A stretch of 64,000 bases of DNA, taken from IMG/VR virus record IMGVR_UViG_3300033146_002768, positions 1 to 64,000 of that record; one strand, written 5' to 3'. The notes beneath the pieces were generated by a model that was given only the letters and a program-made list of their open reading frames with translations, had not been told where the DNA came from and ran no database searches. The stretch's first letter is position 1. Each line of letters starts with the position of its first letter. Made by a program: the position numbers and the translations under genes. Shown in pieces: positions 1 through 48,011 of the stretch.

Positions 1-408
1 TTTGATGGAGACTGCTGCCTTTTATCTATTATATATAAAAAAGAAGAACAAAATATAAAATGTCATATAAGTAAATTATTAGATAATGAAGAATTTGAAT
101 TTATATCTAAACAAGAAAAAAATAATGGAATTATTGTAACTAAATATAAACCAAAAAATAATATATGTATAGAATCTATAGATCCTAAAACTGGTAATAT
201 TGATAACAAAAAAATATCACAATACAGTAGACATGAAAATATAGAAATGTATAAAATAAAAGATAAGAAAAAACGTTTTGAAACATTTTGGTCTTCTTAT
301 GATCATTCATTAATTATATATGATTCTAATAAAGAACAAATAAGGAAAATGAGTCCCAAAGAAGTATTAGAAAATCCAGATGGTAAATTTTTAATTAGGA
401 AAAAATAA
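1..408 (+). CDS. rpoC: RNA polymerase beta' (set 1) N-terminal part, 5'-truncated, ending in the N-half of a split intein
   Basis: Frame +1 is open from base 1 to TAA 406-408 and reads FDGD|CCLLSII...SIDPKTGNIDNKKISQYSRH...WSSYDHSLIIYD...FLIRKK*. FDGD is the end of the catalytic NADFDGD motif. Not in the ORF track. Confidence 0.85.
   Translation, partial: FDGDCCLLSIIYKKEEQNIKCHISKLLDNEEFEFISKQEKNNGIIVTKYKPKNNICIESIDPKTGNIDNKKISQYSRHENIEMYKIKDKKKRFETFWSSYDHSLIIYDSNKEQIRKMSPKEVLENPDGKFLIRKK
13..405 (+). mobile_element. Split intein N-fragment (IntN, 131 aa)
   Basis: Starts with Cys directly after FDGD and contains a block-B-like SYDHSLII (xxDH) motif; ends at a stop codon with no C-terminal splice motif. 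Confidence 0.8.
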
Positions 409-1500
409 ATGAAAAAGTTTGATGTGGAAATTGAAAAAATAAAAAAAGATATTTTATCTGGATTAGAATTTAAAAATATAGTAAAATCTTTTGTTAGAAC
501 TAATAATTTAAACATAGAATTGAAAAAGAGAACAACTTTTTTAGACAACATTTTTTCAAATATTAGAAATATTGATAGATTATGGTTATACATTAATAAT
601 ATTATTAATTATTCACAATTTCCAATATGTGAATATTGTAAAAAAAATAAAGTTAGAATGGAAGTTAATTTTAAAAAAGATATCGGTTTTTCAAAAACTT
701 GTAGTAAAGATTGTGGTATTAAATTAGGTTTATTGAATACAAAATCTCCAGAAGCTATTAAAAAAGCAGAAAAAACTAAAAAGAAAGTTTTAATGGATAA
801 ATATGGCGTTGATCATGTTTCTAAAATATCTGAAGTAAAAATAAAAAAACATAACACAGCTTTAAAAAATTATGGTAGTTTAAAAGCTGCTTATTATGAT
901 ACAGCCAAAAAAACAATTAATGATAAATATAATGTAGATCATGTTTCATTAATTCCTGGAATTAATGAAAAAAAACAAAAAACATCAATAAAACGATATG
1001 GTACTAAATATCCATGGCAATCAGTTAAAGGAAAAGAAAAACAAAAGAACGGGGTTTTAGTAAAATATAACGTTACTAATATTTCAAAATTAGATGAAAT
1101 AAAAGAAAAGAAAAAAGAAACTTATATAAAGCATTATGGAGTTGATAATTACACTAAAACTATAGAATTTATAGAATCAATTAGCGGAGAAAATAATCCT
1201 AATTGGAAAGGTGGTATTTCAAAAAATGAATATTGTGAAATATTTACATTACAAGAGTTTAAAACATTAATTATGGAAAGAGATTTTTGCAAATGTTTGA
1301 ATCCTAGTTGTAATGGGAAATGTAAGAATGATTTAGTTATACATCATATTGATTATAATAAAATGAATTGCAATCTTTTTAATTTAATAACAATTTGTAG
1401 AAGTTGTAATACTATCGCTAATTATGATAGAGAATGGCATAAATCTTGGTATAGTGCTATAATGTTAAAAAGATATAATAAGTGGGGTTTAAATGATTAG
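409..1500 (+). CDS. Free-standing HNH homing endonuclease between the split-intein halves
   Basis: KYG/KYN-type repeats, GENNPNWKGG, and a C-terminal CLNPSC...IHHIDYNK..C...NLITICRSCN HNH motif. Confidence 0.8.
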   Translation: MKKFDVEIEKIKKDILSGLEFKNIVKSFVRTNNLNIELKKRTTFLDNIFSNIRNIDRLWLYINNIINYSQFPICEYCKKNKVRMEVNFKKDIGFSKTCSKDCGIKLGLLNTKSPEAIKKAEKTKKKVLMDKYGVDHVSKISEVKIKKHNTALKNYGSLKAAYYDTAKKTINDKYNVDHVSLIPGINEKKQKTSIKRYGTKYPWQSVKGKEKQKNGVLVKYNVTNISKLDEIKEKKKETYIKHYGVDNYTKTIEFIESISGENNPNWKGGISKNEYCEIFTLQEFKTLIMERDFCKCLNPSCNGKCKNDLVIHHIDYNKMNCNLFNLITICRSCNTIANYDREWHKSWYSAIMLKRYNKWGLND

Positions 1501-1657
1501 TAAAAAAGAACTAATAAAAAATAATATAGAACTAATACCAATTTCTGATTTAAATATTGAATTAGATCCTAATGAAACTATAGCTTATGATTTAACTGTA
1601 GATGATTATTTTACATTTTGTAGTCATGATGGAATTTTTGTACAAGATACTAACTAG
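1493..1657 (+). mobile_element. Split intein C-fragment (IntC, 52 aa, ends ...GIFVQD) followed by +1 Thr of the beta' C-extein
   Basis: ATG 1493 overlaps the HNH stop. Translates MISKKELIKNNIELIPISDLNIELDPNETIAYDLTVDDYFTFCSHDGIFVQD|TN*, with block F (YDLTV) and block G (GIFVQD/T). Not in the ORF track. Confidence 0.8.
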
Positions 1658-2807
1658 CGGCACTTCTTCTGGAGAATTTATTTTTGGTTTATCAAAAGAA
1701 ATGTGGGCTGGTTTATATACAATTTCAAAAGATAAAAAACCTAAAGGGTCTCCAATAGCTGTTTCAAATGAAGATTTATTAACCGCAAAAGATCCTTATA
1801 TAGCTGTTAAATATAGAGGTAATAAAACTACTATGGGGAAAGCTTTAATAAATAGTTGTTTTCCTAAAGATTTAGGTTTTATGGAAGCTCAAGCAACAAA
1901 GAAAACTATTGGAGCAAGAATAGAGCTATCTTATAATAAACATGGTGATGATGTAGTTAAAGCAGTTGTTGATAAATTAAAAGATGTAGGATTTAAATGG
2001 GCTACTATTATGGCTCCTTCTATGAATCTAGATGATTTTGCATTACCTGCATCAGTTATAAAAATTAAAGAAAAATTAAAAACTGCTAATCCAGAAGAAG
2101 CTCAAGATTTGATAGAGCAAGCACAGGTAATATTAGAAAAACATCTAGATAACACTGGGTTTGGAGATTTAGCAAATTCGGGATCAACTAAAGGTTGGGG
2201 TCAGCCAATGCAAATATTAGTTGCAAAGGGTGTTATCGCTGATCCTGATGGTAATGTTTTAGACCCTATATCAGGGTCATTTGCAGATGGTTTATCTAAT
2301 AGAGAATACTTTGACGCATCTCAAGGGGCAAGAAAAGGTATTATTGATAGGGTTATCAATACGGCTGATACTGGTTATATGGCACGTAAATTAGCATATC
2401 TTTTAAACACAGTTGAAGTTGAACGACTTATTAAAGATTGTAGAACTAAAAGAACTGTTGCTATTAAATTAGATGATATTTTAATCAAAAGATTTAAAGG
2501 TAGATATGTAATAAAAAATGGAAAATTAATGTTATTTGATGATGCTAAATTTAAAGTTGGAGATATAGCAAATTTCAGAACTCCTATTTATTGTGAATCA
2601 GAAAAAATATGTCATACTTGTTATGGTAAGTTATTAGAAAGACATCAAACACCTTATGTTGGAATATTAGCAGCACAAATTATTGGGGAACGTGGGACTC
2701 AGTTGATTATGAAAACTTTTCACACGGGTGGTGCCGTATCGCTGATAAAGCGTGATATGCTTGGGGATATCATCAATAATGATCCAATGTCAGGGTTAGA
2801 AAAATAG
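1650..2807 (+). CDS. rpoC: RNA polymerase beta' (set 1) middle part (bridge helix, Zn site, trigger loop); out of frame with IntC
   Basis: GARKGIID..NTADTGYMARKL, CHTCYG, GERGTQLIMKTFHTGG. The track start (1602) overlaps IntC in another frame; homology to the set-2 beta' begins near 1650 (LTSG..GLY). Confidence 0.9.
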   Translation, partial: LTSGTSSGEFIFGLSKEMWAGLYTISKDKKPKGSPIAVSNEDLLTAKDPYIAVKYRGNKTTMGKALINSCFPKDLGFMEAQATKKTIGARIELSYNKHGDDVVKAVVDKLKDVGFKWATIMAPSMNLDDFALPASVIKIKEKLKTANPEEAQDLIEQAQVILEKHLDNTGFGDLANSGSTKGWGQPMQILVAKGVIADPDGNVLDPISGSFADGLSNREYFDASQGARKGIIDRVINTADTGYMARKLAYLLNTVEVERLIKDCRTKRTVAIKLDDILIKRFKGRYVIKNGKLMLFDDAKFKVGDIANFRTPIYCESEKICHTCYGKLLERHQTPYVGILAAQIIGERGTQLIMKTFHTGGAVSLIKRDMLGDIINNDPMSGLEK

Positions 2808-2890
2808 TTTGAGTTACAAACTATATGAAACAGGGGGTTAATAACTTAATTATTTAGAATATATTATAAATCAATATAAGGAGATATAAT

Positions 2891-3174
2891 ATGAAATTAG
2901 TTGAATTGTTAGAAAAAAATTAATTGTTTCTAAAGGTAAAAAGTATTTATGTGGTAGTTGTAATAAATTATTTACTAAAATTGGTATCACAAATCATTAT
3001 TTTTATGCCCATACAGAATCTGGAAGACTTAAAAAAGAAGAAATGAGTCAGAAAGCTAAAATTAAAAATAATACACCAGAAATGAAAAAGAAAATTTCAC
3101 AAGAAACATTAAAAGCATATAATGAAGGAACAGCAAGAGAGAATCATTTAAAAATAGTGCAGTCAAAAAAATAA
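2891..3174 (+). pseudogene. Homing-endonuclease-like remnant with C2H2 zinc finger, frameshifted in an A7 run
   Basis: RBS AAGGAG then ATG 2891 MKLVELLEKN*. The -1 frame continues LIVSKGKKYLCGSCNKLFTKIGITNHYFYAH...PEMKKKIS to TAA 3172-3174. Confidence 0.55.
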
Positions 3175-3186
3175 AGAGGTAATATT

Positions 3187-3462
3187 ATGAATAAACAAAT
3201 AATTTCAATATACATTCAAGAAAATTTTAAAGATAAGCTTCCTACAATTAAAAAAATAAAAACAGAACAACGAAGAATTTATGGAGCTATATATAAATAT
3301 ACAGACTTTTTACCAAAATCAACTTCATTTGCTGAGAGAAGTTATTTATTATCACAAGGTCTTGATAGAAGACCAAAGTGTATGAAATGTGATAAATTAT
3401 TAAAGTTTAAAAGTTATAAAACTGGATATGGTAAAGTATGTTCAAAATCTTGTAAAGGATAA
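3187..3462 (+). CDS. Truncated homing-endonuclease N-terminal Zn-binding domain
   Basis: ERSYLL...PKCMKC...GYGKVCSKSC resembles the N-terminus of the 409 HNH (DRLWL...PICEYC...GFSKTCSKDC). Confidence 0.5.
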   Translation: MNKQIISIYIQENFKDKLPTIKKIKTEQRRIYGAIYKYTDFLPKSTSFAERSYLLSQGLDRRPKCMKCDKLLKFKSYKTGYGKVCSKSCKG

Positions 3463-3466
3463 CTCT

Positions 3467-3760
3467 ATGAAAACCTTAGCTGAAGAATATGTTTTTAAAA
3501 TATTAAAGGAAGCAGTAAAAGTAGGTCAAATAACAAAGACTGGTTTAGTAGCTTCTGCTGTTGGTGGTGGTCTTGTAGGATTAGCTTCTTATTATCTTTA
3601 TAAAAAATATAAACAAGCTCAAGTCAGAGCACAACTGGAAAAAGATCCTTCTAAAAGAAATGAATTAAATGTTAAAGCTAATGATTTAAAACAAAAAGCG
3701 AATAAAACAAAAATGGATGAACAAAAGAAAAAACAATTACAACAACGAATGAAACAATAG
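3467..3760 (+). CDS. Hypothetical protein with one glycine-rich hydrophobic helix and a basic coiled-coil tail
   Basis: AAGGA RBS before ATG 3467; GLVASAVGGGLVGLASYYLY segment. Confidence 0.6.
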   Translation: MKTLAEEYVFKILKEAVKVGQITKTGLVASAVGGGLVGLASYYLYKKYKQAQVRAQLEKDPSKRNELNVKANDLKQKANKTKMDEQKKKQLQQRMKQ

Positions 3761-3770
3761 GCAAGTTAAT

Positions 3771-4484
3771 ATGAAAATTAATAATGTTTTAAAACAAATA
3801 GATCAACAGTTAATATCAATTAAACCGATGACAATAACAATTGATCTTTCAAATTATGATAAGACTAGTTTGAAAGAAACTGAAACTAAGATTTGGGTAA
3901 AATCATTATTAGCATCCGCTGAATATGATAATATTGTTTTTGATATAACATTAGATTATGCTCTTGAATTATTTGTATATGATAGAGAAGATATCGGAAA
4001 AGAATATATTAAATTAAAATATGAAGCTAATGCTCCAGTTTTAGAAGTATCTACAGAAGCTGGTGAATCTGCTGTACAAATTGCTTATGTCGAAAGATTG
4101 ATTGGCGGTAGAGAAATACTAAAAGATGCTGCTCATTTATATAGAAAATTATTTGCTGTATATGGTAAATTATCTAATATGGATTCAGTACATTTAGAAA
4201 TTATGTGTTCACAAGTTTTGAGAGATAAAAAGAATATGCAGATTCCTGCTCGATTAGGAAAGAAGTGGGATCCTATATTAGTTAATTTAAAGAAAGTTAT
4301 TTTTTCAGAAGGGTTTGTTAATGGATTAGCTTTTGAAAATATTAATGATGCTATAAAAACAGGTCTAATAACAGAAGAAAAAGGTGAAGCAAGTATTATA
4401 GAGAAAGTAATGACTGGCAGTTTAGTTGATGAAAAACGAGGAAAAAATTCAAGATTAGGTGATAGAGGTTATAAAAATAGATAG
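3771..4484 (+). CDS. rpoC: RNA polymerase beta' (set 1) C-terminal part
   Basis: VHLEIMCSQVLRD and FVNGLAFEN...TG align with HVHFECVVSQLM and LMGLAFSN...G at the end of the set-2 beta'. Confidence 0.8.
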   Translation: MKINNVLKQIDQQLISIKPMTITIDLSNYDKTSLKETETKIWVKSLLASAEYDNIVFDITLDYALELFVYDREDIGKEYIKLKYEANAPVLEVSTEAGESAVQIAYVERLIGGREILKDAAHLYRKLFAVYGKLSNMDSVHLEIMCSQVLRDKKNMQIPARLGKKWDPILVNLKKVIFSEGFVNGLAFENINDAIKTGLITEEKGEASIIEKVMTGSLVDEKRGKNSRLGDRGYKNR

Positions 4485-4492
4485 GATAAATT

Positions 4493-5353
4493 ATGAGTAA
4501 ATATAAAGGAGATATATTATGTAGTTATGGTTGTGGTCATAAAGCTAAATATTTTTTTACATCAACAAAAAAATATTGTTGCTCATCTCATTTTTCTCAA
4601 TGTCCTATTAGAAGAAAACAATCTAAAAACTATATGACTGGTTTAAGAGTTGGTAATAAAAATCCTAGATATGGTGTAAAAATGAGCAATGAATTAAAAG
4701 AAAAAATACGAAAAGGAAATAAAGAAAATAATTATAATCCAAGTATTAAAACTCGAGAAAAAATGGCTATATCAAGTAAATTATCTATTAAGAATATTAA
4801 TATTAAATATAAATTATTTAGTAAAATAGAGAATTTAAGATATAAACCAGCTCATAAAAAAGAAAAAATAATTCAAGTTAGATGTAAATCTAATAATTGT
4901 AATAAATGGTTTACTCCATCTTATATACAATTATATGAAAGAATAAGAAATATTGAAATCAATGAATTAGATAATTCATATTTTTATTGTTCTGAAAAAT
5001 GTAAAGAAGAGTGTCCTTTATATGGAAAGAGAGTTGAAACTTTAATCAAAGAAGATAAAATAAATGTTGGGCATATAGAGGAATCTTGGTATACTTCTCA
5101 AGAATATCAAACATGGAGAGATCAAGTTTTTAAATTAGATAATAGTAAGTGTGTTTGGTGTAATAAAGAAGCTACGATAGCTCATCATATTTTACCTCAA
5201 AAGATTTATCCAAATCTTAGTTTAGATCCTGAGAATGGATTATCATGTTGTCAAAAATGTCATTATAAATATGGACATCGTGATTCTTTATGTAATACTA
5301 ATCATTTAAGTAAATTAATTTGTGATCGTACTTATAGAATTAAAAATAGATAA
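4493..5353 (+). CDS. HNH endonuclease (CxYGCG N-terminus, NUMOD3-like motifs)
   Basis: CSYGCG, KYCCS, GNKNPRYG, CVWC...AHHILP...NGLSCCQKCH; paralog of 13276. Confidence 0.8.
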   Translation: MSKYKGDILCSYGCGHKAKYFFTSTKKYCCSSHFSQCPIRRKQSKNYMTGLRVGNKNPRYGVKMSNELKEKIRKGNKENNYNPSIKTREKMAISSKLSIKNINIKYKLFSKIENLRYKPAHKKEKIIQVRCKSNNCNKWFTPSYIQLYERIRNIEINELDNSYFYCSEKCKEECPLYGKRVETLIKEDKINVGHIEESWYTSQEYQTWRDQVFKLDNSKCVWCNKEATIAHHILPQKIYPNLSLDPENGLSCCQKCHYKYGHRDSLCNTNHLSKLICDRTYRIKNR

Positions 5354-5367
5354 TAGGAGAAATTTGA

Positions 5368-6738
5368 ATGCTTGACGTGACATATATTTATACAAGCTAT
5401 ACGAATATTACAGATTTAAAAAAAGATAGATTAGATGCTTGGCCATCTACACCAAGAGTAATGACAAATATTTTAAATAATCAAAAAGATTTACGAGTAA
5501 CATATAGTACAATACCTTTACTTATATCATTAGCTTATATTGAATATTGTAAAAATGAACTAAATCCTAATTGGACTAAATTTCATTATGAGTTTTGTAA
5601 AGAGATAGTTAAAACTATTAAAACTGAATACGTATTATTAACTTTAGGTAATCCTTGGGAAATAATATTTTTAGGGATTTTAATAGATGCGGGCAAAAAA
5701 GTAGTTGTTGGCGGACCGTATGTAAAATCATATGATTTAGAAATTTTAAGAGAGATGTTTAAAGTAAATGGTTGTAAGAATCTTGATAATGTTATAATAG
5801 TTCGACCTTTTATTAATAAAGATGTTAATATTTATAATATTATTCAACTTTGGAAAGATATTGATATGGACATAGTATATGATTGCTCTGATATATATCT
5901 AACTGAATCTGATTTTTATTTATCATTTAAACCAACATTTAAAAATCATAAAATTCTTTTTAAACGATTTAGTATAATATCTCAAACAACATGTGGGTGG
6001 GGTAAATGCTCATTTTGTAAATATTCAGTTAAAACACATTCTAAAAAATTTATAAATTCTAAAAATTTTGAAGAAGTTATGAGAAATACTTTTAATTTAA
6101 TGAAACAAGTTGGTGCTACTAAACTTAATATAATGGATCCAGAGTTTTATTTTACTAAAACTAATTGTAAAATATTGAATGAGTTTAGAAAAAAAGGATA
6201 TAAAGTAATCTTTTTTGTTAGTGTAAGACAATTACTTAATGATGATTTCTTTGATAATATATTTATAAAATATTCAGATGTTATACAATCAATATTAATT
6301 GGGTTTGAATGTATTGAAGATTTTAGTTTAAAGTTATTAAATAAAGGTGTAAATGAAAACGATACATTTAAAATAATACAAAAGATTTGTAATTATAAAT
6401 CAGATGTAGGAATATTAGCTCTTTTTATGTCCAATCTTGCTACTAATAATAAAGATGCTGTAACTAAGAATTACAAAAATATTAAGAAATTTAAAGATAT
6501 GTGTAATCAAAATGATATTAAATATAATTTTTCTTTTTCTGAATTTAATGCAAATCCTTTATCTGAGTATACTACAAATAATCCTTATTTAAGATTAAAA
6601 TATCATCCATTATATGTATTGAATGATTATGATCGAGTTGATGAAAACGGAAACATATTTTCAAAACATGATTCAAAAATTATTGATAGTGAATTATATA
6701 ATGAAATAATAGAATTTTTTAGATGGGGTAATATATAA
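5368..6738 (+). CDS. Radical SAM protein with a degenerate B12-binding-like N-domain
   Basis: VVVGGP; CGWGKCSFC Fe-S motif; IGFE...LKLLNKG. Confidence 0.7.
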   Translation: MLDVTYIYTSYTNITDLKKDRLDAWPSTPRVMTNILNNQKDLRVTYSTIPLLISLAYIEYCKNELNPNWTKFHYEFCKEIVKTIKTEYVLLTLGNPWEIIFLGILIDAGKKVVVGGPYVKSYDLEILREMFKVNGCKNLDNVIIVRPFINKDVNIYNIIQLWKDIDMDIVYDCSDIYLTESDFYLSFKPTFKNHKILFKRFSIISQTTCGWGKCSFCKYSVKTHSKKFINSKNFEEVMRNTFNLMKQVGATKLNIMDPEFYFTKTNCKILNEFRKKGYKVIFFVSVRQLLNDDFFDNIFIKYSDVIQSILIGFECIEDFSLKLLNKGVNENDTFKIIQKICNYKSDVGILALFMSNLATNNKDAVTKNYKNIKKFKDMCNQNDIKYNFSFSEFNANPLSEYTTNNPYLRLKYHPLYVLNDYDRVDENGNIFSKHDSKIIDSELYNEIIEFFRWGNI

Positions 6739-8070
6739 ATGTTAGATATTACATATGTATATACTGCATTTTCAAGATATTTACCAAATAAATCTAGTAG
6801 ATCTTATCCTCTTACAACAAGAGTTATGACTAAGATTTTAAATAATCAAAAAAAATTAAATGTTATATATAGTGATATACCTTTATTAGCAATATTAACA
6901 TATTTAAAATATAAATCTACTTATGAAATATTTTATAAAAATTTTAGAAAAGATGCAATAAAAACTATAAATACTAAACATGTTTTATTGACATTAGGAA
7001 CATCTTATGATTTATTATTTGGAGTTGATTTATTAAATTCTGGTTTTAAAGTTATAGTTGGTGGTTCTCTTACAAAAATATATAATATTAAAGAATTAAG
7101 AAAAATATTTAAAACAAATGGTTGTAATAATTTAGATAATTTAATTATTGTTAGACCTTATATAAATAAAGATGTTGATTTATATGAAATAATAATAAAC
7201 AATAAAGATATAGGAATGGAATATAAATATGATATTTCTGATATTTATAATTCTGATGAAGATTTCTATCTAAATTATATTCCTTATTTAAAAAAATATA
7301 ATTATGATTTTACAATAGTATCATCCTTTTTTAATTCAATTTGTACATGGAGTAATTGTAATTTTTGTACTTATAAACAAAAAGATTGTCAAGTTAATTT
7401 TATGAATATGAATAATGTTTATAAAATTGCAGAATCTACAAAAAAAATAATGAATAAATATGATACAAATTGTAATTGTATTTTAGATCCAGATTTTCAG
7501 TTTAATGAAATAAGTGAAACATATTTAAAATTAATGTCTGATGATGGTTATAAAGTTGGAATTATGACTAGTATTAGATCATTAAAAGATAATACATATT
7601 TTGATAGAATATTTAATAATGAAAAAGATTTTTTTGCTATATATATTGGGATTGAAACTTTAGATAATTTTGCTTTAGGATTATTAAATAAAGGTTCAGA
7701 TGTAAATGATTCTATTAAAATTTTTGATAAAATAATCAAAAGAAAAAATAAAAATATTTTAGTTCATTGTTTATTAATGTTAAATTTAGCATCAAAAAAT
7801 AAAGAACATATTATTGAAGGATATAATAAATTAGCTGAAATTAGACTTAAATTTCTAAGAGCTGGGATACAGTTAGAAATATTACCTATTGATTTAGAAT
7901 TATATCCTGAAATTGAATATTCAAATAATAAATTTTTTAAATTATTAACACCTCCTGATAAAATACCTTGTTTATATGAAAGATATGATATAAATGGTAA
8001 AAAAATATTATTTGATAAACAAATAGTAGATAAAAAAATATTTAAATTTGTTAATTATTATAGAAAGTAA
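6739..8070 (+). CDS. Radical SAM protein, tandem paralog of 5368
   Basis: VIVGGS; CTWSNCNFC; IGIE...LGLLNKG; shares MLDxTYxYT and NGCxNLDNxIIVRPxINKDV with 5368. Confidence 0.7.
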   Translation: MLDITYVYTAFSRYLPNKSSRSYPLTTRVMTKILNNQKKLNVIYSDIPLLAILTYLKYKSTYEIFYKNFRKDAIKTINTKHVLLTLGTSYDLLFGVDLLNSGFKVIVGGSLTKIYNIKELRKIFKTNGCNNLDNLIIVRPYINKDVDLYEIIINNKDIGMEYKYDISDIYNSDEDFYLNYIPYLKKYNYDFTIVSSFFNSICTWSNCNFCTYKQKDCQVNFMNMNNVYKIAESTKKIMNKYDTNCNCILDPDFQFNEISETYLKLMSDDGYKVGIMTSIRSLKDNTYFDRIFNNEKDFFAIYIGIETLDNFALGLLNKGSDVNDSIKIFDKIIKRKNKNILVHCLLMLNLASKNKEHIIEGYNKLAEIRLKFLRAGIQLEILPIDLELYPEIEYSNNKFFKLLTPPDKIPCLYERYDINGKKILFDKQIVDKKIFKFVNYYRK

Positions 8071-8083
8071 AAGGAATAATATC

Positions 8084-8773
8084 ATGACTACTTTAGAAAT
8101 GCAATATGATTTAAATAATATTATGAATGAATCTAATTATGATGAATTGTTAGAAATTTATAATTCCATAACTAATAATTCTATTTTAACAGAAGGAATT
8201 GCTTCTATTCCTATGAATAAGGCAAAACAAATGTTGAAGAAAATTTCTTCATTTAAAAATCCAAAACAAATGGAATCATTTATTAAATCTAATAAAAAAT
8301 TTGTTAAATCAGAAAAAGATTTAAACGTTAATGTAAAAAAATTAGCTAAGAAATTAAATTATACAGACGCTGAAGTTCAAGCTTCAAGAGTTAGTATTAT
8401 GAAATCTTTAGCTTTAATTTCTCAATTTGCAGGATTAGCTTCATTATTAGGGATTCCTTTAATTATTATTATTATGTTAATTGCAGCAGCTAAAGGTAAA
8501 TCACTATCAGAAGTAACAGATCAAATTTTAGACGATATTAAAGTATCAATTAGAAAAGATGTTAAAGGTCCATACGAAACAAGTATTCAAAATATTATAT
8601 GGGGATTGATTATTTATATAGGTAGTTTGATTGTTATGTTATTAGGTGGAGCTTTAGCTGTTGATGCTATAGTGGCAATAGGAGCTATTGGATTTCTTGT
8701 TGGTTTAATTTTGTTAATTATTTCTGTTATTTCATTTATGTGGACTTTTGTTACAACTCCACTTCGTGACTAA
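8084..8773 (+). CDS. Membrane protein, unknown function
   Basis: About three hydrophobic segments; AAGGA RBS before ATG 8084. Confidence 0.6.
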   Translation: MTTLEMQYDLNNIMNESNYDELLEIYNSITNNSILTEGIASIPMNKAKQMLKKISSFKNPKQMESFIKSNKKFVKSEKDLNVNVKKLAKKLNYTDAEVQASRVSIMKSLALISQFAGLASLLGIPLIIIIMLIAAAKGKSLSEVTDQILDDIKVSIRKDVKGPYETSIQNIIWGLIIYIGSLIVMLLGGALAVDAIVAIGAIGFLVGLILLIISVISFMWTFVTTPLRD

Positions 8774-8786
8774 AAAGAGGTAAAAA

Positions 8787-9140
8787 ATGTATAATTATAA
8801 AGCAATAATTACAAGAGTTGTTGATGGTGATACTTATGATGCTGAAATAGATTTAGGGTTTAATATAAAAGTTAAACAAAGACTAAGATTAAAAGATGTT
8901 GATACTCCTGAAACATGGAGACCTAAAACTGAATCAGAGAGAGCACATGGAATGAAAGCATCTCAATATGTAATGGAATTAATTGAAGGTCAACAAGTAA
9001 CATTAACTTCAGTTAAATCAGCAGTATATTCAAGATATGAAGCATACATTGAAATTAAAGGATATGATTTAGGAACATTAATTACAGAACATGGATTTAC
9101 TAAATTAGATAAATACGAGGATATAAATGATTCAATTTAA
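8787..9140 (+). CDS. Thermonuclease (SNase-like) family nuclease
   Basis: RVVDGDT, RL..VDTPE motifs. Confidence 0.85.
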   Translation: MYNYKAIITRVVDGDTYDAEIDLGFNIKVKQRLRLKDVDTPETWRPKTESERAHGMKASQYVMELIEGQQVTLTSVKSAVYSRYEAYIEIKGYDLGTLITEHGFTKLDKYEDINDSI

Positions 9141-12100
9141 AGCGTTAAAACCGTATGCACATGTTGTTAATGGAGTACGATTTCCTCAAAGTATGAAGAC
9201 TCCATTTATAATAGTTTACTTTAGTGAAAATTCATCGCTGATGGATGATTATTCAAAGTTGAATATGGTTCGTGTTGATGCTAAAAAAGTTATTATTCCT
9301 AAAACTAAAATTCCATTTAGCTTTATTACTCCAGAAACTAAAAAAGCATATAAAGCTCATGGATTAGTTGCTTCTAGTTCGACACAAGCAATACCTCAAG
9401 GACAGAATTTAATATATGATCTTAGTTTATTCTTACAAACTCTTGAGGATGCGTATAAAAGTAAAAACTATAGAGCAAGAAGTGGATTTATATTAAAAAA
9501 TTTAATAAGTAAGATATTTAATTCATTCCCAAGTAACTATCAAAAAGTATTTATGTATTCAGTTGATGCTACTAAAGAGGTTAATAAATATATAGATAGA
9601 AAGATATTCCCTTTTATATTAGAAATGAAAAAGAATAATATTTATTATGATCATTTTGTAATGAATACTATTAGCGGATCTTCATCAAGATATAGATTAC
9701 TAATGAAAGACAGATCACTTAATTTCAATAAAGCTAATCTATATTTAAAAAATATTAAAATAATTGATACAGATGAAGAAGTTGATAATAAAGTGGAGGT
9801 AGCATCTAATACAGTTGTTAAGAAAATATCAGATGAAATTAGATCTTCTAATAAAAAAGTATTCAAACAATCCATTCAGAAATTTCTTGAAAAGAATCCT
9901 AAAGCGTTGGAAAAAACACATAATGGAGAAATTTCTGATAATGAGGCTAAAGATATTGCTATAGCATCTGTTCTATATAGATCAACTGGTGATATGAATA
10001 AAGCTAAAATAACAGCTAAAAATATTCCTGGTATCAAAAAATCTATTGGGTTAAAAGTTATTGATAAAAGGTTCGCTGATGAATTACTTCAACCTCAAAA
10101 AACAGAATTAACATCTGAAAAGTTAGTTGTTCAAATGCATAATGTTGCTAAAGCTGTAGGTAATAAATCTCCAGAGCATATTTTTGAAAAAAGAAAAATT
10201 GATTTTGAGACTAATTTAAAGAAAGATATTGTTAATTCATTTAAAGTATTAGAAACTAAAGGTGTTCCTTTAAAGTTTAAAAGTGTTAAAGTTATTAAAA
10301 AAGCAGTTAGACATGGTGATTTATCTCCATCAGATATTAGTACTATTCATGTAACTTTAGTTGATAAATTTAATAGAACACATACTGTATTAATTGATGT
10401 ACCAAATGTATCGGATGATGGAACATTTAAAATTAATGGTAAAAAGAAATGTCTTATTAATCAATTAGTACTATGTCCTATAACATTTCCTAAAAAATTA
10501 GATAGTAAATTTGAAAGTTCTTATTCAACATTCCATATTTGGAGTAAGAGAACTAAGAGGGAACAATATTTAGAAGCTTATATTGGATCGTATAAAGTCC
10601 CATTATTAGTATTGTTATCTTTCTCATTTGGGTTTAAAGAGACGTTAAAATTATATGATATTAGGTATAAGTTAACCGATATAAAACCTGATAAAGAGGT
10701 CAAATGGACTGTTAAAGTTGATGATAACAACTGGTTATTATTTGATAATATAAACAATAAATTAAAAGAAGAGATAATTCAATCTCTTATTCATACCGAT
10801 TTATATTCATATAAAGATAAAATAAAAAACGGTGAATTATTTAGCCATGAATATTTTAATAACTTAATTATTAAAATGTCAGGTCGTATTAATTCAACAT
10901 TCTTAATTCAATCAAACCTTGAAAACATTGTTGATCCTGTTGCTAAGCAAGTATTAATTAATAAACAACTACCAAGTGATTTATATTTAATTATGCAATA
11001 TATGTCAACTAAGGTTGTTGAAGGATATACTCAAAAGAGAAATGATATATCTAATCAAAGAATAAGAAACTCTGAGGTTATAGTTCATTTAGCTCAAAAA
11101 CAAATTCTAGCAGCTCATACTGAGTATAAAGAGCAAGTGTTATCTGGTAATAAAAAAGCTATTTTTGATATTTCTCAAACTAAAGTATTAAGTGATTTTA
11201 TTAACTCTGAAATTGTTGCTGATATGGAGTATGCAAATCCTATTGAGGAAATGGCTACCAAAACAAGAGTATCACCAGTAGGTAAAGCAGTAGGTGGGAT
11301 TCCTGATAAACAAGCTATCCAAAATGAGGGTAGAAATGTACATGATTCTATGTTTGGAAATATTGATACCCTTGATACACCAGAAGGTGAAAATGTTGGT
11401 ATTGTACAGCAGTTAACAGTTGATGCTTTTATAACATCAGCAAGGGGTATCATTCAAACTAAAGATAAAAAAGAAGGCGAAAACTCTGGTTTGTTATCTA
11501 CAACAGCTGCTCAAATTCCATTTGTTGAAAATAATGATGGTAACAGAGTTATGTTTGGGTGTAGTCAAATGAGACAGGCAGTCCCTTTAAGAAATCCAGA
11601 GACTCCAATGATTCAATCAGGGTATGAATCTATATTAACAAGCGTTTTATCAAGTGATTTTATTAAAAAAGCACCATGTAATGGAAAAGTAACAAGAGTT
11701 ACAAAAGATGAAATATCTATTAAATGCACCAGTGGCGGTAATAAAGTAATCCCAATCATTCCAGTTCATCTAAGATCAGGTTCTGGTAAAGATACATTGA
11801 GTGTTTTTAAACCAACAGTTAAACCTGGTAGTGTTGTAAAAACTAAACAAATTATAGCAGAAGGGTCTTGTATAACTGGTGGTTCTATTGCAACAGGAAG
11901 AAGTATGTGTGTTGCTTTAATGCCTTATAAAGGATTTAACTTTGAAGATGGTATTGTTATATCTGAAAGAATAGTTCGTGAAGGTGTTTTAAATTCATTA
12001 CATGGTATTGTTGAAGAAATTGAAATAGGTAAAGATGATAGAGTTGTATTTATAAATGAACTTGGTAAAGAAACTATTAAAGGTGAACCGCTTATAAGAA

Positions 12101-13275: not shown

Positions 13276-14370
13276 ATGGAAATATGTGAATATGGTTGTG
13301 GTAAGGAAGCAATATATCAATTTAAAAATAAAAAATGGTGTTGTTCAAAAAATGTATCTAAATGTTCTGGTACAATTAATAAACTAAAAAATAGAAAAGT
13401 TTCTGATGAAACTCGAAAAAAACAATCAGCTTCATTAAAAGGTAAACTTCCATGGAACAAAGGAAAAGAATTATCTGAATCACATAAACTTAAAATAGGT
13501 TTAGGTAATAAAGGCAAAACTGTTTCTAAAGAAAGTAAAAAGAAAATGTCAGAATCAATGAAAGGTAAACAAAATAGATTAGGATTTGAATTATCTCAAG
13601 CAACTAAAAATAAAATATCTAATTCAAATAAAGGTAAAATTCCATGGAATTTAGGAAAAAGTCATTCATATGAAACTAGAAAAAAGATAGGATCTAAAAG
13701 TAAAAATAGATTTTGTTCTGATGATACTAGAGAAAAAATGAGATTATCAAAACTTGGTGAAAAAAATCATATGTTTGGAAGGAAACTTTCTAATGATCAA
13801 AAGTTAAAATTATTAGAATCTAATCAATATTCTATTAGAGATATTGAAAAAAAGTTTCCATTATTTTCTAAAATAGAAGAAATGAGATATAATCCAAATA
13901 ATCTTTTAGAGAATGAAATACAAGTACATTGTAAAAACCACAAATGCCAAAATTCAAAAGAACAAGGTGGTTGGTTTACTCCAATGAGATGGCAAATAAC
14001 ACATAGAATTCATAATATTGAAAAGGGTTTAGTTAATGATGGTTTATATTTCTATTGTTCTAACGAATGTAAATATGAATGTCCATTATATCATTCAAAA
14101 ATAAATACAAAAAATAATAAACCATATACACAAGAAGAATATCAAACTTTTAGACAACAAGTATTAAAACGAGAAGATGAAATTTGTGAGTATTGTGGAG
14201 AAAAAGCTACTCATGTTCATCATTCACGTCCTCAGAAATTAGAACCAGGTTTTGTTTTAGATCCTGATTTTGGAATAGCATGTTGTCAAAAGTGTCACTA
14301 TAAATATGGTCATAAAACTGGAACAGAATGTTCTACAGGAAATTTAGCAAATATTGTATGCTCTACTTAA
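13276..14370 (+). CDS. HNH endonuclease with NUMOD3 repeats
   Basis: CEYGCG, repeated PWNKGK/ETRKK motifs, CEYC...HVHH...CCQKCH. Confidence 0.8.
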   Translation: MEICEYGCGKEAIYQFKNKKWCCSKNVSKCSGTINKLKNRKVSDETRKKQSASLKGKLPWNKGKELSESHKLKIGLGNKGKTVSKESKKKMSESMKGKQNRLGFELSQATKNKISNSNKGKIPWNLGKSHSYETRKKIGSKSKNRFCSDDTREKMRLSKLGEKNHMFGRKLSNDQKLKLLESNQYSIRDIEKKFPLFSKIEEMRYNPNNLLENEIQVHCKNHKCQNSKEQGGWFTPMRWQITHRIHNIEKGLVNDGLYFYCSNECKYECPLYHSKINTKNNKPYTQEEYQTFRQQVLKREDEICEYCGEKATHVHHSRPQKLEPGFVLDPDFGIACCQKCHYKYGHKTGTECSTGNLANIVCST

Positions 14371-14415
14371 TAAAGCAGAGCTTAATTAATAATATATATA
14401 GAATGGAGAAGAACA

Positions 14416-14757
14416 ATGGAAAAGAAAGATGGCGGGAATATAAGTCACTGGCAATTACATCATTTGAAGTTTCCTGAAGAAGATAGAGTAGCATTTGAGT
14501 CTTATAATTCAGAAGTTGATTTTGATAATATAATGATGGTTACTGGAACAGTTGTTAATGAACCAACAGAGAGATGGAACCCTGGCGACCATTTTAGATC
14601 ATCTATGATAATTGAGGTTGATAGAAAAAATAATACTATTGAAACTTTAAATACTATTTATCATTTTGATCCTAAAACAGAAGGTCAAGATACAATTTTT
14701 GATATTGAAACAGGTAATAAAGATATGGGCAATAAAGTTCTTGGTATATTTTATTAA
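14416..14757 (+). CDS. Hypothetical protein
   Basis: ORF with GGAG RBS. Confidence 0.6.
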   Translation: MEKKDGGNISHWQLHHLKFPEEDRVAFESYNSEVDFDNIMMVTGTVVNEPTERWNPGDHFRSSMIIEVDRKNNTIETLNTIYHFDPKTEGQDTIFDIETGNKDMGNKVLGIFY

Positions 14758-14765
14758 GGAGTATT

Positions 14766-15353
14766 ATGGATAATCTTCAAGTATTAGCAGGATCATCATT
14801 ACCTTTACCAGAAGATGATGATCCCAACCAAAATAATTTAAATTATGAAGCTTCTATTGAATATGATGGAATGGAAGTTGTTTCTGCTATTGGTACGTCA
14901 GAATTTAAAGAAATTTATATGTTATTTATAAATGGATTAAAACAAATGGCAATTGTCGACCAAAGAAGATTATGTTTAGATATTTTAGAAAAAGTTAAAG
15001 AAGTTTATGAATATGAATTTCTTCCTCACCCAGAATTAGAACATCAACTAAATATGAATAATGTATATGATTTGATAAAATTTCTCAATTATGATTATAC
15101 TGATTTCTTTGGAGATGTTTGGATGTATCAAAGAGGTATTAATTTAAAGACCATAAATGTAGAAAGTTATTGCAAACGTAATTCTGATTTAATAATAACA
15201 GAAGTTGAAGACCAGTTAAATTCACGAGATTTATCTGAGATGGTTTCTTTATTCCTTAGAACATATAATAAAGACAATCTTATAGAGTGGTTTATTGAAG
15301 CTACTGAAAAACAGAAAATGTTAATTTATTTAAGAATAATGGAGGAAAGCTAA
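14766..15353 (+). CDS. Hypothetical protein
   Basis: ORF with AAGGAG RBS. Confidence 0.65.
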   Translation: MDNLQVLAGSSLPLPEDDDPNQNNLNYEASIEYDGMEVVSAIGTSEFKEIYMLFINGLKQMAIVDQRRLCLDILEKVKEVYEYEFLPHPELEHQLNMNNVYDLIKFLNYDYTDFFGDVWMYQRGINLKTINVESYCKRNSDLIITEVEDQLNSRDLSEMVSLFLRTYNKDNLIEWFIEATEKQKMLIYLRIMEES

Positions 15354-45290: not shown

Positions 45291-48011
45291 ATGCCAACAT
45301 TATTAAATTTTGAAGAATTTTGTGAAGATTTGAAAGAGATAACTACAACCAAGTATCTTAATAAAAAACAATTTCATCCAGAAGGATTGTTTTCAGAACA
45401 GATATTTGGTCCATCTAAAAACTATACATGCCAGTGTGGAACATATTGGGGAATTTCTGGATCAGGTGGTACTTGTGCAACATGTGAAGTTGATGTTGTA
45501 AATAGCAATGTTAGACGTAAAAGATTTGCTAAGATAATTCTACCAGTTCCAGTTGTTAATCCATTATTCTATGATCTTGTTTGTGATCTTGGCGGACGTC
45601 AGGTCAAAGCTGCTTTAGATCAACTCATGAAAGATGAGAATAGTATAATGATTTTTGATGAAGAAGAGCAAGAATGGCTTGTAGAAAAACAAGATCCAGA
45701 GAATATTGATAGAAATGCTTTAGTTGGAACAAATGCAATTCAAGTTTTGATTGAAGATTTGACTGATGCAGTATTAGCAGCAGGTGATACAACTTGGGAA
45801 GTTATTAAAGATAATATTGATCAATTGATTATAAGTCATGTTGTTGTTCTTCCTCCTGATTTAAGACCAGCTTCTAAAAAGGTTAGTCGAAAAGGTCAGG
45901 TATCATCTGATAAAATCAATAGATTTTATACTCAGATATTAACAAAGAAAGAAGCATTTGCTGAAACTAATTGTGATGTTAGAGTTGATAGAAATTTATA
46001 TTATAATTACTATCGACAATTACAAAAAGATGTTAATGAACTTTATGCATTTATACTTGAGAAAATGTCAAAAAAAGAAGGATTGATTCGTGGTAATATT
46101 CTTGGTAAGCGAATTGATTTCTCTGGTAGAGCAGTAATTGTTCCTGATCCAACTTTAAATATGGATCAATGTTCATTACCATACTTGATGTTTCTTGAAT
46201 TATTTAAGTTGAAAATTGCAAAGAAAATTATTGATCTTGGTAGATTTAAAAAGATTAATAATGCAATTGATTTTATTGATGATTGTATTGAGATTAATAA
46301 TCCTGTATTATTTAATACTTGTGAAGAGATTGCTGTAGATGAAGTATGTATTTTAAATCGTCAACCTTCTTTGCATAGATTAAGTTTATTGGGATACAGA
46401 ACCAAAGTTTCTTTAGATAAAGTTATTAAGATTCACCCTCTTTCATGTCCTCCATTTAATGCGGATTTTGATGGTGATCAAATGGCTGTATATATTCCAA
46501 TCAGTGAAGAAAGTAAACAAGAAGTATTAGATAGATTACTAGTTATTAGAAATCTAACTAACCCTTCAAATGGTAGTTTGTCAACCACACCAAGTCAAGA
46601 TGTTATACTTGGACTATATGCTGTGTCTCATGAAGTATTTGAAGATTTACAGTATGATGTTGAATGTAAAGGTAAAACGATTAAAGCTGATAGAGCTTTA
46701 TTGAATGATTGTTTTCCAGAAGATTATCCAGTTATTGATGAACATGTTGGCGGAAAAAGAATTAAAGAAATTTTAAGTGATATAAATTTCAGATATTCAA
46801 ATGAAATAACAGCAGATGTGTTGGATAAGATTAAGTTCCTTGGTTTTAAATACTCCACATTATTTGGAGCAACACTTTCATTAGATGAAATGTTCATAGA
46901 AGGTTGTTATGAAAAACGTGATTCATTATATGCGGGTGAAACAATAATGGAACAGTTAGAGATGGTATCTAATGATGAAACAACTCAATATCTTAGAGAT
47001 AATTTTAATTATGCTTATATGGTAGAGTCTGGTGCCAGAGGTAGTTGGGATCAGGTAAGACAGATAGTATTAACTCGAGGTTTCATCTCAAATTTTAGAG
47101 GTGAAATTATTGAAAGACCGATTAAACATAGTTTCATAAATGGTCTTACTCCTCAAGAGTTCTTTGATTCAACTAATGGTAGCCGTAAAGGATTACTTGA
47201 TGTTGCATTGAATACTGGTACATCTGGATATCTATCAAGAAAGTTAATCTTTACCTGCGCTAATCTTCAAATTGATAGAACATTTGATGATTGCGGAACA
47301 ACTGATCTTCTTCAAGTATTTGTTGATAATGAGAAGAAAGCTAAAATGTTAATCGGTAAACATTTTATGGAAAGTGGTAATCTTATTAAAATGACTGAGT
47401 ATAACTATCTTGGTTATGTTGGTAAGACAATTGAAATTAGAAGTCCTATATTTTGTAAAAATGATAAGGTTTGTAAAACTTGTTATGGTGAATTACATGA
47501 AGTAATTGATACTGATTTTATTGGGGTAATTGCAGCTCAGAGTCTTGGGGAATGTAATACTCAGTTGGTATTGAGAACTTTTCATACATCAGGTGTTGCA
47601 GTTGTTGGTAAGAATAATGAAGATGGTTCTAATGATATGAAACAACAGGATATTGTTGCTGATTTATCTACAGTATCAAAACTTCTTCATAAATTTCCAA
47701 AAGATACAACTCCAGCAGCTTTGGTTGCCAAATTATATACTTGTTATAACAGTAGTAGAACTATTCATCATGTTCATTTTGAATGTGTTGTGTCTCAGTT
47801 GATGTGGTTTGGTACTTCTAAATGGAGATTAGTTGACAATAGAGAGAATGTTGTACCTAAGTACCTTTCTGTTCAAACTGTCCCATCAAATGAAAGTTGG
47901 CTAATGGGATTAGCATTCTCTAATCCAAAGAAGCATATAATCAAGGGTATTTTAGAATCTGGTTTATATCATGGAGTTATGGATAAAATACTCTGTGGAG
48001 AAGAAGTTTAA
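45291..48011 (+). CDS. rpoC: RNA polymerase beta' subunit (set 2), intact
   Basis: GLFSEQIFG, CQCG..CATC, PP.LRP, GKRIDFSGR, NRQPSLH, NADFDGDQM, TSGYLSRKL, RTFH. Confidence 0.97.
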   Translation: MPTLLNFEEFCEDLKEITTTKYLNKKQFHPEGLFSEQIFGPSKNYTCQCGTYWGISGSGGTCATCEVDVVNSNVRRKRFAKIILPVPVVNPLFYDLVCDLGGRQVKAALDQLMKDENSIMIFDEEEQEWLVEKQDPENIDRNALVGTNAIQVLIEDLTDAVLAAGDTTWEVIKDNIDQLIISHVVVLPPDLRPASKKVSRKGQVSSDKINRFYTQILTKKEAFAETNCDVRVDRNLYYNYYRQLQKDVNELYAFILEKMSKKEGLIRGNILGKRIDFSGRAVIVPDPTLNMDQCSLPYLMFLELFKLKIAKKIIDLGRFKKINNAIDFIDDCIEINNPVLFNTCEEIAVDEVCILNRQPSLHRLSLLGYRTKVSLDKVIKIHPLSCPPFNADFDGDQMAVYIPISEESKQEVLDRLLVIRNLTNPSNGSLSTTPSQDVILGLYAVSHEVFEDLQYDVECKGKTIKADRALLNDCFPEDYPVIDEHVGGKRIKEILSDINFRYSNEITADVLDKIKFLGFKYSTLFGATLSLDEMFIEGCYEKRDSLYAGETIMEQLEMVSNDETTQYLRDNFNYAYMVESGARGSWDQVRQIVLTRGFISNFRGEIIERPIKHSFINGLTPQEFFDSTNGSRKGLLDVALNTGTSGYLSRKLIFTCANLQIDRTFDDCGTTDLLQVFVDNEKKAKMLIGKHFMESGNLIKMTEYNYLGYVGKTIEIRSPIFCKNDKVCKTCYGELHEVIDTDFIGVIAAQSLGECNTQLVLRTFHTSGVAVVGKNNEDGSNDMKQQDIVADLSTVSKLLHKFPKDTTPAALVAKLYTCYNSSRTIHHVHFECVVSQLMWFGTSKWRLVDNRENVVPKYLSVQTVPSNESWLMGLAFSNPKKHIIKGILESGLYHGVMDKILCGEEV

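Follow-up and report, generated by a model that had tools for sequence, protein, structure and literature searches.

A putative 5'-truncated copy of a fractured RNA polymerase beta' gene, carrying a split intein that ends in Gln-Asp, at the start of a jumbo-phage contig

Genes interrupted by a split intein, with a free-standing endonuclease gene between the intein halves, are known as fractured genes and were described at 26 loci in ocean metagenomes by Dassa et al. in 2009 (PMC2677866), who regarded the layout as intermediate between the contiguous and the split form of inteins. Here we describe a locus of this kind in the beta' subunit gene of a multisubunit RNA polymerase, at the very start of the window, by which we mean the first 64 kb (64,000 nucleotides, nt) of the 207,111-bp metagenomic contig JGI Ga0366841_1000030 (IMG/VR record IMGVR_UViG_3300033146_002768; base 1 is shared by both), a jumbo-phage contig with 29% G+C. 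We consider it highly probable that the region contains a copy, truncated at its 5' end, of the fractured beta' gene of a jumbo-phage polymerase, and that intact relatives of this gene trans-splice. The loci of PMC2677866 are similarly environmental and phage-like, and have two host open reading frames (ORFs) on the same strand, fused to intein halves, with an endonuclease ORF between them. They differ in that no RNA polymerase is among their hosts, their endonucleases are GIY-YIG/Vsr-like and their inteins end in Asn, whereas the insertion here lies in beta' at NADFDGD/T (the slash marking the junction of extein and intein), has a DUF7487/HNH-type endonuclease and ends in Gln-Asp.

Several other systems share part of this description. 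In the Pseudomonas jumbo phage MIJ3 (PMC6892783) a split intein divides an essential polymerase gene, and a separate HNH-family gene (orf154) lies between the two parts of that gene, but there the host is PolB, block G is canonical (...VHN/S) and no close sequence relationship to the present intein is detectable. Inteins with a C-terminal Asp or Gln were described by Amitai, Dassa and Pietrokovski in 2004, and in the review PMC4031507 Asp/Gln cyclisation is proposed for step 3; like the intein here they do not end in Asn, and among PDB sequences the N-half of the present intein matches the Pab and Pho PolII mini-inteins best. The C-terminal-Gln examples that the review names, namely the PolII inteins of Pyrococcus abyssi and Methanoculleus marisnigri and the RNR intein of Chilo iridescent virus, have other host proteins, whereas here Gln-Asp is fixed across a mostly split family. 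The cysteine-less Aes123 PolB1 split intein (PDB 9hth) is the best structural match, and is likewise phage-derived and split, with the Ser1 chemistry of most members, but has ~20% sequence identity, another host gene and a C-terminal Asn. Inteins of archaeal RNA polymerases (Mja rPol A', Mja rPol A'' and Nph rPol A'', as cited in PMC1635734) share the largest-subunit lineage of multisubunit RNA polymerases but are archaeal, and 14 largest-subunit cases have been counted under COG0086 (PMC4760082). The archaeal inteins are probably not allelic with the phage intein; Methanocaldococcus was not returned when one genome per species was scanned for NADFDGD with a Cys next to it, a search confined to Cys starts. 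Our literature search found no paper that combines 'intein' with 'NADFDGD' or places an intein at the NADFDGD site. The host, the site and the natural split-intein family are new; the kind of element is a known one. A first-pass annotation of this DNA, made from the sequence alone, had overstated the unusualness of the locus, as inteins ending in Asp or Gln (PMC4031507) and a jumbo-phage split intein with an HNH gene (PMC6892783) had been published.

The cassette sits exactly between the last Asp of the NADFDGD catalytic triad and the next residue, Thr, and is predicted from its sequence to consist of the N-half of a class-1-type intein (IntN), a free-standing DUF7487/HNH homing-endonuclease gene and the intein C-half (IntC; Table 1). 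The contig starts at window base 1, and the visible N-extein is limited to four codons, its remainder not being in the window. The complete arrangement can be seen in a relative, L119 (ENA, 14,789 bp), where the full N-extein ...VGVHNADFDGD/CCLLSI..., a 363-residue endonuclease gene and an IntC in frame into the C-extein follow one another, with a downstream junction ...FVQD/TMAIYHPLT... at which IntC runs into TMAIYHPLTNEAQEEARTRMMKLTSGTSSNEF... The L119 IntN (in protein P0008) is amino-acid identical to that of the window, as is its IntC, and the endonucleases differ at 3 residues. In a second relative, L014, the N-extein ...NADFDGD/SCLCSI... leads into a 132-residue IntN and a stop codon, followed by a 356-residue gene with the same HNH-type motif at its end and by a third ORF that starts MLTKQDLL... 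and reads ...DGVFVQD/TMAIFHPITRESQ... directly into the C-extein. The same three-gene order with a DUF7487 gene in the middle is found in L124, L125/L126 and L127, and the full fractured layout, with both halves fused in frame and separated by a same-strand endonuclease ORF, is present in L014, L119, L124, L125 and L127. The window has the N-half fusion and the endonuclease ORF, whereas its IntC ends Thr-Asn-stop and its C-half is frameshifted.

That the host is a multisubunit RNA polymerase beta' is indicated by PF00623 on the N-halves, by HNADFDGD in L119 and by Pfam matches to Rpb1_3 and Rpb1_5 over window 1602-2804; at the amino-acid level the window C-extein is 82-88% identical to the C-halves of beta' homologues of 778-781 residues that have no interruption. 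A search with IntN found 18 proteins of 504-531 residues that join a beta' N-half (PF00623) to a related IntN (E 1e-25 to 1e-77), and a search with IntC found 10 proteins in which IntC continues in frame into the C-extein (E 1e-17 to 1e-30), with the junction F(V/L)QD followed by (T/S)MA in 10/10. With matches of this strength to 18 and 10 homologues, the arrangement read in the window is not due to chance. The cassette in the window is near-identical to that of L119 (99.6%) in a background that is 86% identical, which suggests, indirectly, that it is mobile. Its G+C content is 21.7% (window 1-1652), against 27.0% in 1653-6000 and 28.8% in the whole window, which is consistent with a mobile element of other history or merely with Lys/Asn-rich coding.

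Relatives include orthologous alleles without the insertion. A scan of viral contigs with the beta' C-part returned 12 related loci (54-86% identity), and in 11 of them beta' is a single uninterrupted ORF of ~780-850 residues whose sequence is ...NADFDGD(Q/T/A)MA(I/V/L)(Y/F)HP(L/I)T.EAQ.E....M... up to an LTSG-like stretch; the closest, L007 (86%), reads FDGD-TMAIYHPLTNEAQEEARTRMMK-LTSGTSSNEF. The L007 beta' has 1367 homologues at E<=1e-50 in a database search, and the 14 nearest to the window C-part (64-88% identity) all retain TMAIYHPLT.EAQ.EA..RMMKLTSGTSS. Searches of deposited phage genomes by blastn and tblastn gave distant beta' relatives only. The insertion is thus in frame at a conserved host site and absent from orthologous alleles, with the window keeping only the N-side junction and Thr+1. 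The first-pass annotation had read the region as beta' fractured at the Mg-binding loop, on the understanding that FDGD belongs to an NADFDGD motif, and both points are borne out by the L119 upstream sequence and by the intein-less relatives, which read NADFDGD-T/Q/A-MAIYHP. Its comparison with a second beta'-like gene in the window was not needed, given that orthologous intein-less alleles exist. That gene (set 2; ORF 45291-48011, plus strand) has PPFNADFDGDQMAVYIPISEE at 46449-46469, uninterrupted, and of the two polymerase sets only one carries the cassette.

The intein belongs to a sizeable family. When 1.84 billion cluster representatives were searched with a profile built from 18 IntN sequences, 103 matched at E<=1e-3 and 85 at E<=1e-10, and about 100 cluster representatives have this intein at the NADFDGD/T or NADFDGD/S site. 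Three architectures occur. In the canonical split form IntN is the C-terminus of proteins of ~505-540 residues. In an atypical split form, profile positions ~27-131 lie at residues 3-110 of proteins of 620-870 residues, and among representatives clustered at 50% identity it looks at least as common as the canonical form; the example L120 (3909-8403; P0019, P0030) has an N-half ending ...NADFDGD/SVYGRIVCRINGKVQTLHISELEQLDV-stop, that is, a 27-residue IntN, then an unrelated 172-residue ORF without a Pfam or PHROG match, and then a protein (P0019) that unites the remaining IntN homologue, the IntC homologue and ...GIFVQD/TFAMYMPLTEEA... The third form is contiguous, for example P0163 (a 203-residue mini-intein) and P0188 (448 residues). 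The C-terminal-Gln PolII and RNR inteins named above, which interrupt different host proteins, are contiguous as well. One insertion site with three forms, contiguous, canonical split and atypical split with ~27-residue IntN, makes this family useful for studying the transition from contiguous to split inteins, and its many cysteine-less (Ser1/Thr+1), Asp-ending members are raw material for orthogonal split-intein tools.

The one-genome-per-species scan for NADFDGD followed by Cys also returned two LAGLIDADG-type inteins at NADFDGD/T, on short contigs in bacterial metagenome-assembled genomes (Brevefilum and 'uncultured proteobacterium'). One (L132, 307-1689) is a contiguous intein of 461 residues at the same site, with the end IIHD/TMGIHDP, Pfam matches to PF14890 (8e-7) and Hom_end (1.7e-4) and an hhalign E of 1.7e-5 against the family profile; the other (L135, 1-718, minus strand) is a second contiguous intein of the same kind. 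Because the extein (TMGIHDPVTEEA) looks phage-like, these contigs may be mis-binned phage DNA.

Residues expected to matter for splicing are strongly constrained wherever the junctions are visible. The first intein residue after (N/G)ADFDGD is S in 28, T in 7, C in 5 and A in 1, hence S, T or C in 40/41, and the C-junction is QD/T in 16, QD/S in 3 and ND/T in 1, which gives Gln-Asp in 19/20 and a terminal Asp in 20/20. In an alignment of 18 IntN sequences (A2) residue 1 is always S, C or T, residue 2 is free and D-H-S-L is invariant within a conserved block B S-x-D-H-S-L; across the family neither the block B His nor the block F Asp changes. At +1, intein-bearing alleles have T or S, while Q or A is also used in intein-less ones. 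The window fits this pattern with Cys1 and S-Y-D-H, in keeping with the N-terminal nucleophile and block B T/S-x-x-H of inteins; the usual C-terminal His-Asn is replaced by Gln-Asp, with the +1 Thr or Ser present. Because published inteins with a terminal Asp or Gln do splice (PMC4031507), this end is a variant feature and no reason to exclude the element. An intein start at the second Cys (with 'CL' as block A) was considered and dropped, residue 1 being the conserved nucleophile and residue 2 variable in the alignment.

Searched against PDB sequences, IntN, IntC and the profile of IntN drew nothing beyond weak PolII-intein matches. Because the single halves gave no or weak matches, the Hint fold was examined on a natural fused homologue, P0019, whose residues 1-186 hold the equivalent of IntN ~26-131 and IntC in one chain. 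Its residues 1-200 match PF14890 Intein_splicing at E 1.5e-4 (model positions 22-153), below the gathering score. An AlphaFold2 model of P0019:1-186, built from an alignment (A3) of the family IntN and IntC pieces, has a predicted local distance difference test score (pLDDT) of 89.0 and a predicted template modelling score (pTM) of 0.81. In a Foldseek search of the PDB with this model, the top 35 matches are all intein-type (Hint) structures, namely inteins, two intein-encoded homing endonucleases and bacterial intein-like domains, headed by the cysteine-less Aes123 PolB1 split intein in fused form (E 1.1e-7, probability 1.00). In the model this fused homologue thus has a Hint fold, as the first-pass annotation had expected of the joined halves.

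The endonuclease consists of a DUF7487 module (Pfam, 1.9e-20) and a C-terminal HNH-type motif, VIHHIDYNK..N..NLITICRSCN, in which HH..N..N..C..C is visible by eye; the HNH_3 match has E 0.0017 and 18.4 bits against a cut-off of 24.8. It also matches PHROG 3339 'homing endonuclease' (E 1.6e-15), and a search of viral contigs with the 363-residue protein gave distant endonucleases only. A DUF7487 gene occupies the same place in L014, L119, L124, L125 and L127. In L124 the gene between the intein halves (5548-7491) encodes 647 residues with DUF7487 and is without the HNH-type C-terminus of the others, and L125 has an extra NUMOD3/HNH gene (8669-9524) immediately 3' of the beta' C-half.

Table 1. 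Features of the interrupted beta' gene at the start of the window
Feature	Position	Strand	Details
beta' N-extein, final four codons FDGD	1-12	+	frame 1; L119 has HNADFDGD at the homologous place
IntN, 131 residues	13-405, TAA 406-408	+	frame 1; CCLLSI...SSYDHSLIIY...LIRKK; Cys1 nucleophile, block B S-Y-D-H-S-L-I
Endonuclease gene, 363 residues	409-1500	+	ATG at the codon right after the IntN TAA, same frame
IntC, 52 residues	1493-1648	+	frame 2; block F YDLTV, block G DGIFVQD, Gln-Asp end
Thr(+1)-Asn-TAG, everything after IntC in the IntC frame	1649-1657	+	intact relatives have in-frame TMAIYHP...
Aberrant junction, about 1652/1653	1649-1656		65-nt segment absent; identity to L119 falls from 99.64% to 86%
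Rest of beta' C-extein	1650 to stop at 2807	+	frame 3 (+1 relative to IntC); Pfam RNA_pol_Rpb1_3 and Rpb1_5

The three cassette ORFs abut or overlap (the IntC ATG overlaps the 3' end of the endonuclease gene by 8 nt), and for this reason they are probably one operon. In the intact relatives the two beta' halves would be made as separate polypeptides, and IntN (131 residues) and IntC (52 residues) would join into a Hint fold. By the class-1 route, Ser, Cys or Thr1 would form a (thio)ester that Thr or Ser+1 attacks, and the terminal Asp would cyclise where Asn is usual, for which PMC4031507 offers precedent. The catalytic loop would then be resealed as ...NADFDGD-TMAIYHP..., and the DUF7487/HNH protein would drive homing of the cassette into intein-less alleles. 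Splicing would be required, because a domain of ~180 residues would otherwise occupy the Mg-binding loop, and with a protein-splicing element in this metal-binding loop polymerase activity in these phages should be strictly splicing-conditional.

Some observations weigh against this account of the locus. Trans-splicing in the family is deduced from conserved catalytic positions. Taken singly, IntN and IntC match no Pfam intein family at E<=1, and the PDB sequence matches of IntN are limited to the Pyrococcus PolII mini-inteins (Pab, Pho) at a weak E of 0.02-0.5. As regards the window copy, an intact allele of its own lineage was not found among the beta' homologues searched. A short-read assembler as a rule requires genuine k-mers that span a join, and this disfavours a purely software artefact as the origin of the break described below.

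The strongest rival explanation, which we nevertheless regard as improbable, is that the intein halves are non-splicing relics that only hold the beta' halves together non-covalently, much like the products of intein-free genes split by an endonuclease. It can point to the terminal Asp and penultimate Gln in place of the canonical Asn and His, and to documented HNH-split phage genes that work without splicing (Aeh1 nrdA, as cited in PMC2677866). Yet residue 1 is S, T or C in nearly every member although its neighbour, residue 2, varies freely, position +1 never holds anything but T or S even though intein-less alleles also have Q or A there, and the block B His, block F Asp and terminal Asp do not vary. 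This pattern of nucleophile and terminal Asp is what would be expected under selection for splicing, and would not be expected of inert relics. A domain of ~180 residues retained in the Mg-binding loop should also block catalysis, and inteins with a C-terminal Asp have been demonstrated to splice (PMC4031507).

Trans-splicing, as preferred for the intact relatives, does not extend to the window copy, in which the 3' side of the cassette is broken. IntC makes up residues 1-52 of a 54-codon ORF (1493-1657, frame 2) that finish ...YDLTVDDYFTFCSHDGIFVQD and close ...AYDLTVDDYFTFCSHDGIFVQD, after which come Thr, Asn and TAG, and the beta' C-part begins LTSGTSSGEFIFGLSKEMWAGLY... (LTSGTSSGEF...) at 1650, within an ORF spanning 1602-2807. 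Between Gln-Asp/Thr and LTSGTSS, 65 nt (21 codons and 2 nt) that every relative keeps are gone, the 21 missing residues being MAIYHPLTNEAQEEARTRMMK. By blastn, window 1-1652 corresponds to L119 10860-12511 at 99.64% identity (6 mismatches) and window 1651-2690 to L119 12575-13614 at 86.3%, with L119 12512-12576 (65 nt) having no counterpart in the window. A 1147-nt Logan contig from run X1 tracks the window up to 1652 with 4 differences, then has 86 letters against 21 in the window (net +65) and continues at 85% identity. A contig from run X2 is identical to the window over 1524-1652 and then reads TGGCAATTTATCATCCTTTAACT, in-frame (T)MAIYHPLT; after these 129 identical bases the sequence is ...ACTA followed by TGGCAATTTATCATCC (T-MAIYHP). 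Among the public-run contigs examined the window junction at 1652/1653 is unsupported, which does not prove absence, and for the 60 bases centred on it no public run was listed, which likewise leaves absence unproven. The window contains no other copy of the MAIYHP... segment that is missing here.

Both edges of the cassette in fact meet discontinuities, the contig starting 12 nt upstream of it and the 3' break falling at the cassette boundary. The N-extein of the window's lineage was sought at the other end of the contig: a search with the L007 N-extein did not find it there, a profile search gave none among the best 80 loci, and a degenerate DNA pattern matched the contig of L007 only. A terminal repeat of the first 36 contig bases was not found either.

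The window junction is aberrant, either a cross-strain assembly join or a defective recombinant. We lean slightly towards an assembler-captured join or minor variant in a mixture of strains that share the cassette, because the gene is at its most conserved in the missing 63 nt, a place where co-occurring strains would tangle an assembly graph; the presence of many related phages in sister samples also counts for an artefact or minor variant. That it is a genuine illegitimate-recombination product of cassette transfer is a serious, if somewhat less probable, possibility, for which the dependence of short-read assembly on real joining k-mers speaks. Either way, because the C-extein is frameshifted and 21 invariant residues are missing, the copy would be non-functional or mis-joined and, as assembled, should be unable to give a functional beta'. 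Trans-splicing in the window could only yield N-extein-Thr-Asn; the C-half would not be spliced in, because it is out of frame, lacks a credible start codon and is 21 residues short. For practical purposes the window gene model is broken and should serve neither as the working form nor as an expression template, for which L119 or L014 is preferable.

The first-pass annotation had placed FDGD and the adjoining Cys, the IntN, the HNH-type gene, the IntC and Gln-Asp/Thr correctly, and the Gln-Asp end that it remarked on is real and conserved, but it overlooked the end of the IntC ORF two codons past the junction and that beta' resumes in the +1 frame. Splicing to FDGD-T, as it proposed, agrees with the in-frame QD/TMAIYHP of L119 at the level of the family and not with the Thr-Asn-TAG and out-of-frame C-half of the window, so that its claim of a window polymerase rebuilt by trans-splicing falls. 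It was an accurate but incomplete observation, with a reading that is right for the element and the family and wrong for the window sequence.

It is very unlikely that the window sequence is correct and its junction functional in any way, with beta' made from separate pieces or by a +1 frameshift at ACT-A-ACT before the TAG and doing without the 21 residues next to the catalytic loop. Phage beta' subunits do tolerate splitting, as in phiKZ-type polymerases, and ATGs are present in the C-extein frame at 1602, 1626 and 1629. These internal ATGs have no evident ribosome-binding site upstream, however, and no slippery motif is seen; MAIYHPLT.EAQ.EA..M is retained in 11/11 orthologous loci, in ~15 intact fractured loci and in the closest of the 1367 homologues, and an identical IntC elsewhere precedes the intact segment. 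A self-splicing intron with an HNH gene and coincidental intein-like motifs can practically be dismissed: the MIILH... of frame 3 from 1602 bears a superficial likeness to the MAIYH found after FDGD-T in relatives, but this stretch lies over conserved IntC codons and is not followed by the conserved PLT.EAQ, window 1-4000 has no Rfam match at E<=0.1, about 100 cluster representatives conserve IntN and IntC as protein, with in-frame fusion to exteins, and a Hint fold was found by the model and Foldseek.

A more speculative idea, to which we give little credence, is that in this phage clade completion of the catalytic loop depends on a Gln-Asp, mostly cysteine-less split intein whose atypical and probably slow Asp cyclisation acts as a post-translational timer or switch, the fixation of Gln-Asp in ~100 lineages and three architectures reflecting selection for such control. 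If this were true, the intein would not be a neutral parasite.

Further endonuclease-like genes and a further intein lie close by. Just downstream of beta' in the window, 4493-5353 (plus strand) encodes a 286-residue HNH endonuclease that matches PHROGs 144, 119 and 589 at about 5e-10, and a 91-residue ORF at 3187-3462 (plus strand), with a counterpart in L007, resembles the N-terminal Cys-rich part of PHROG 3339 (7e-4). In L119 the same beta' carries a second, contiguous LAGLIDADG intein (13636-14787) with Pfam matches to LAGLIDADG_3 (4.8e-8), Intein_splicing (3e-6) and Hom_end (5.7e-6). Its site reads ...GERGTQLIMK/CSVGL...FVQNHN/, directly before TFHTGGA, and the window counterpart at ~2690 is without it. 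Several homologues of 1071-1165 residues (P0023, P0035, P0052) have intein or LAGLIDADG Pfam matches and may hold the same second insertion.

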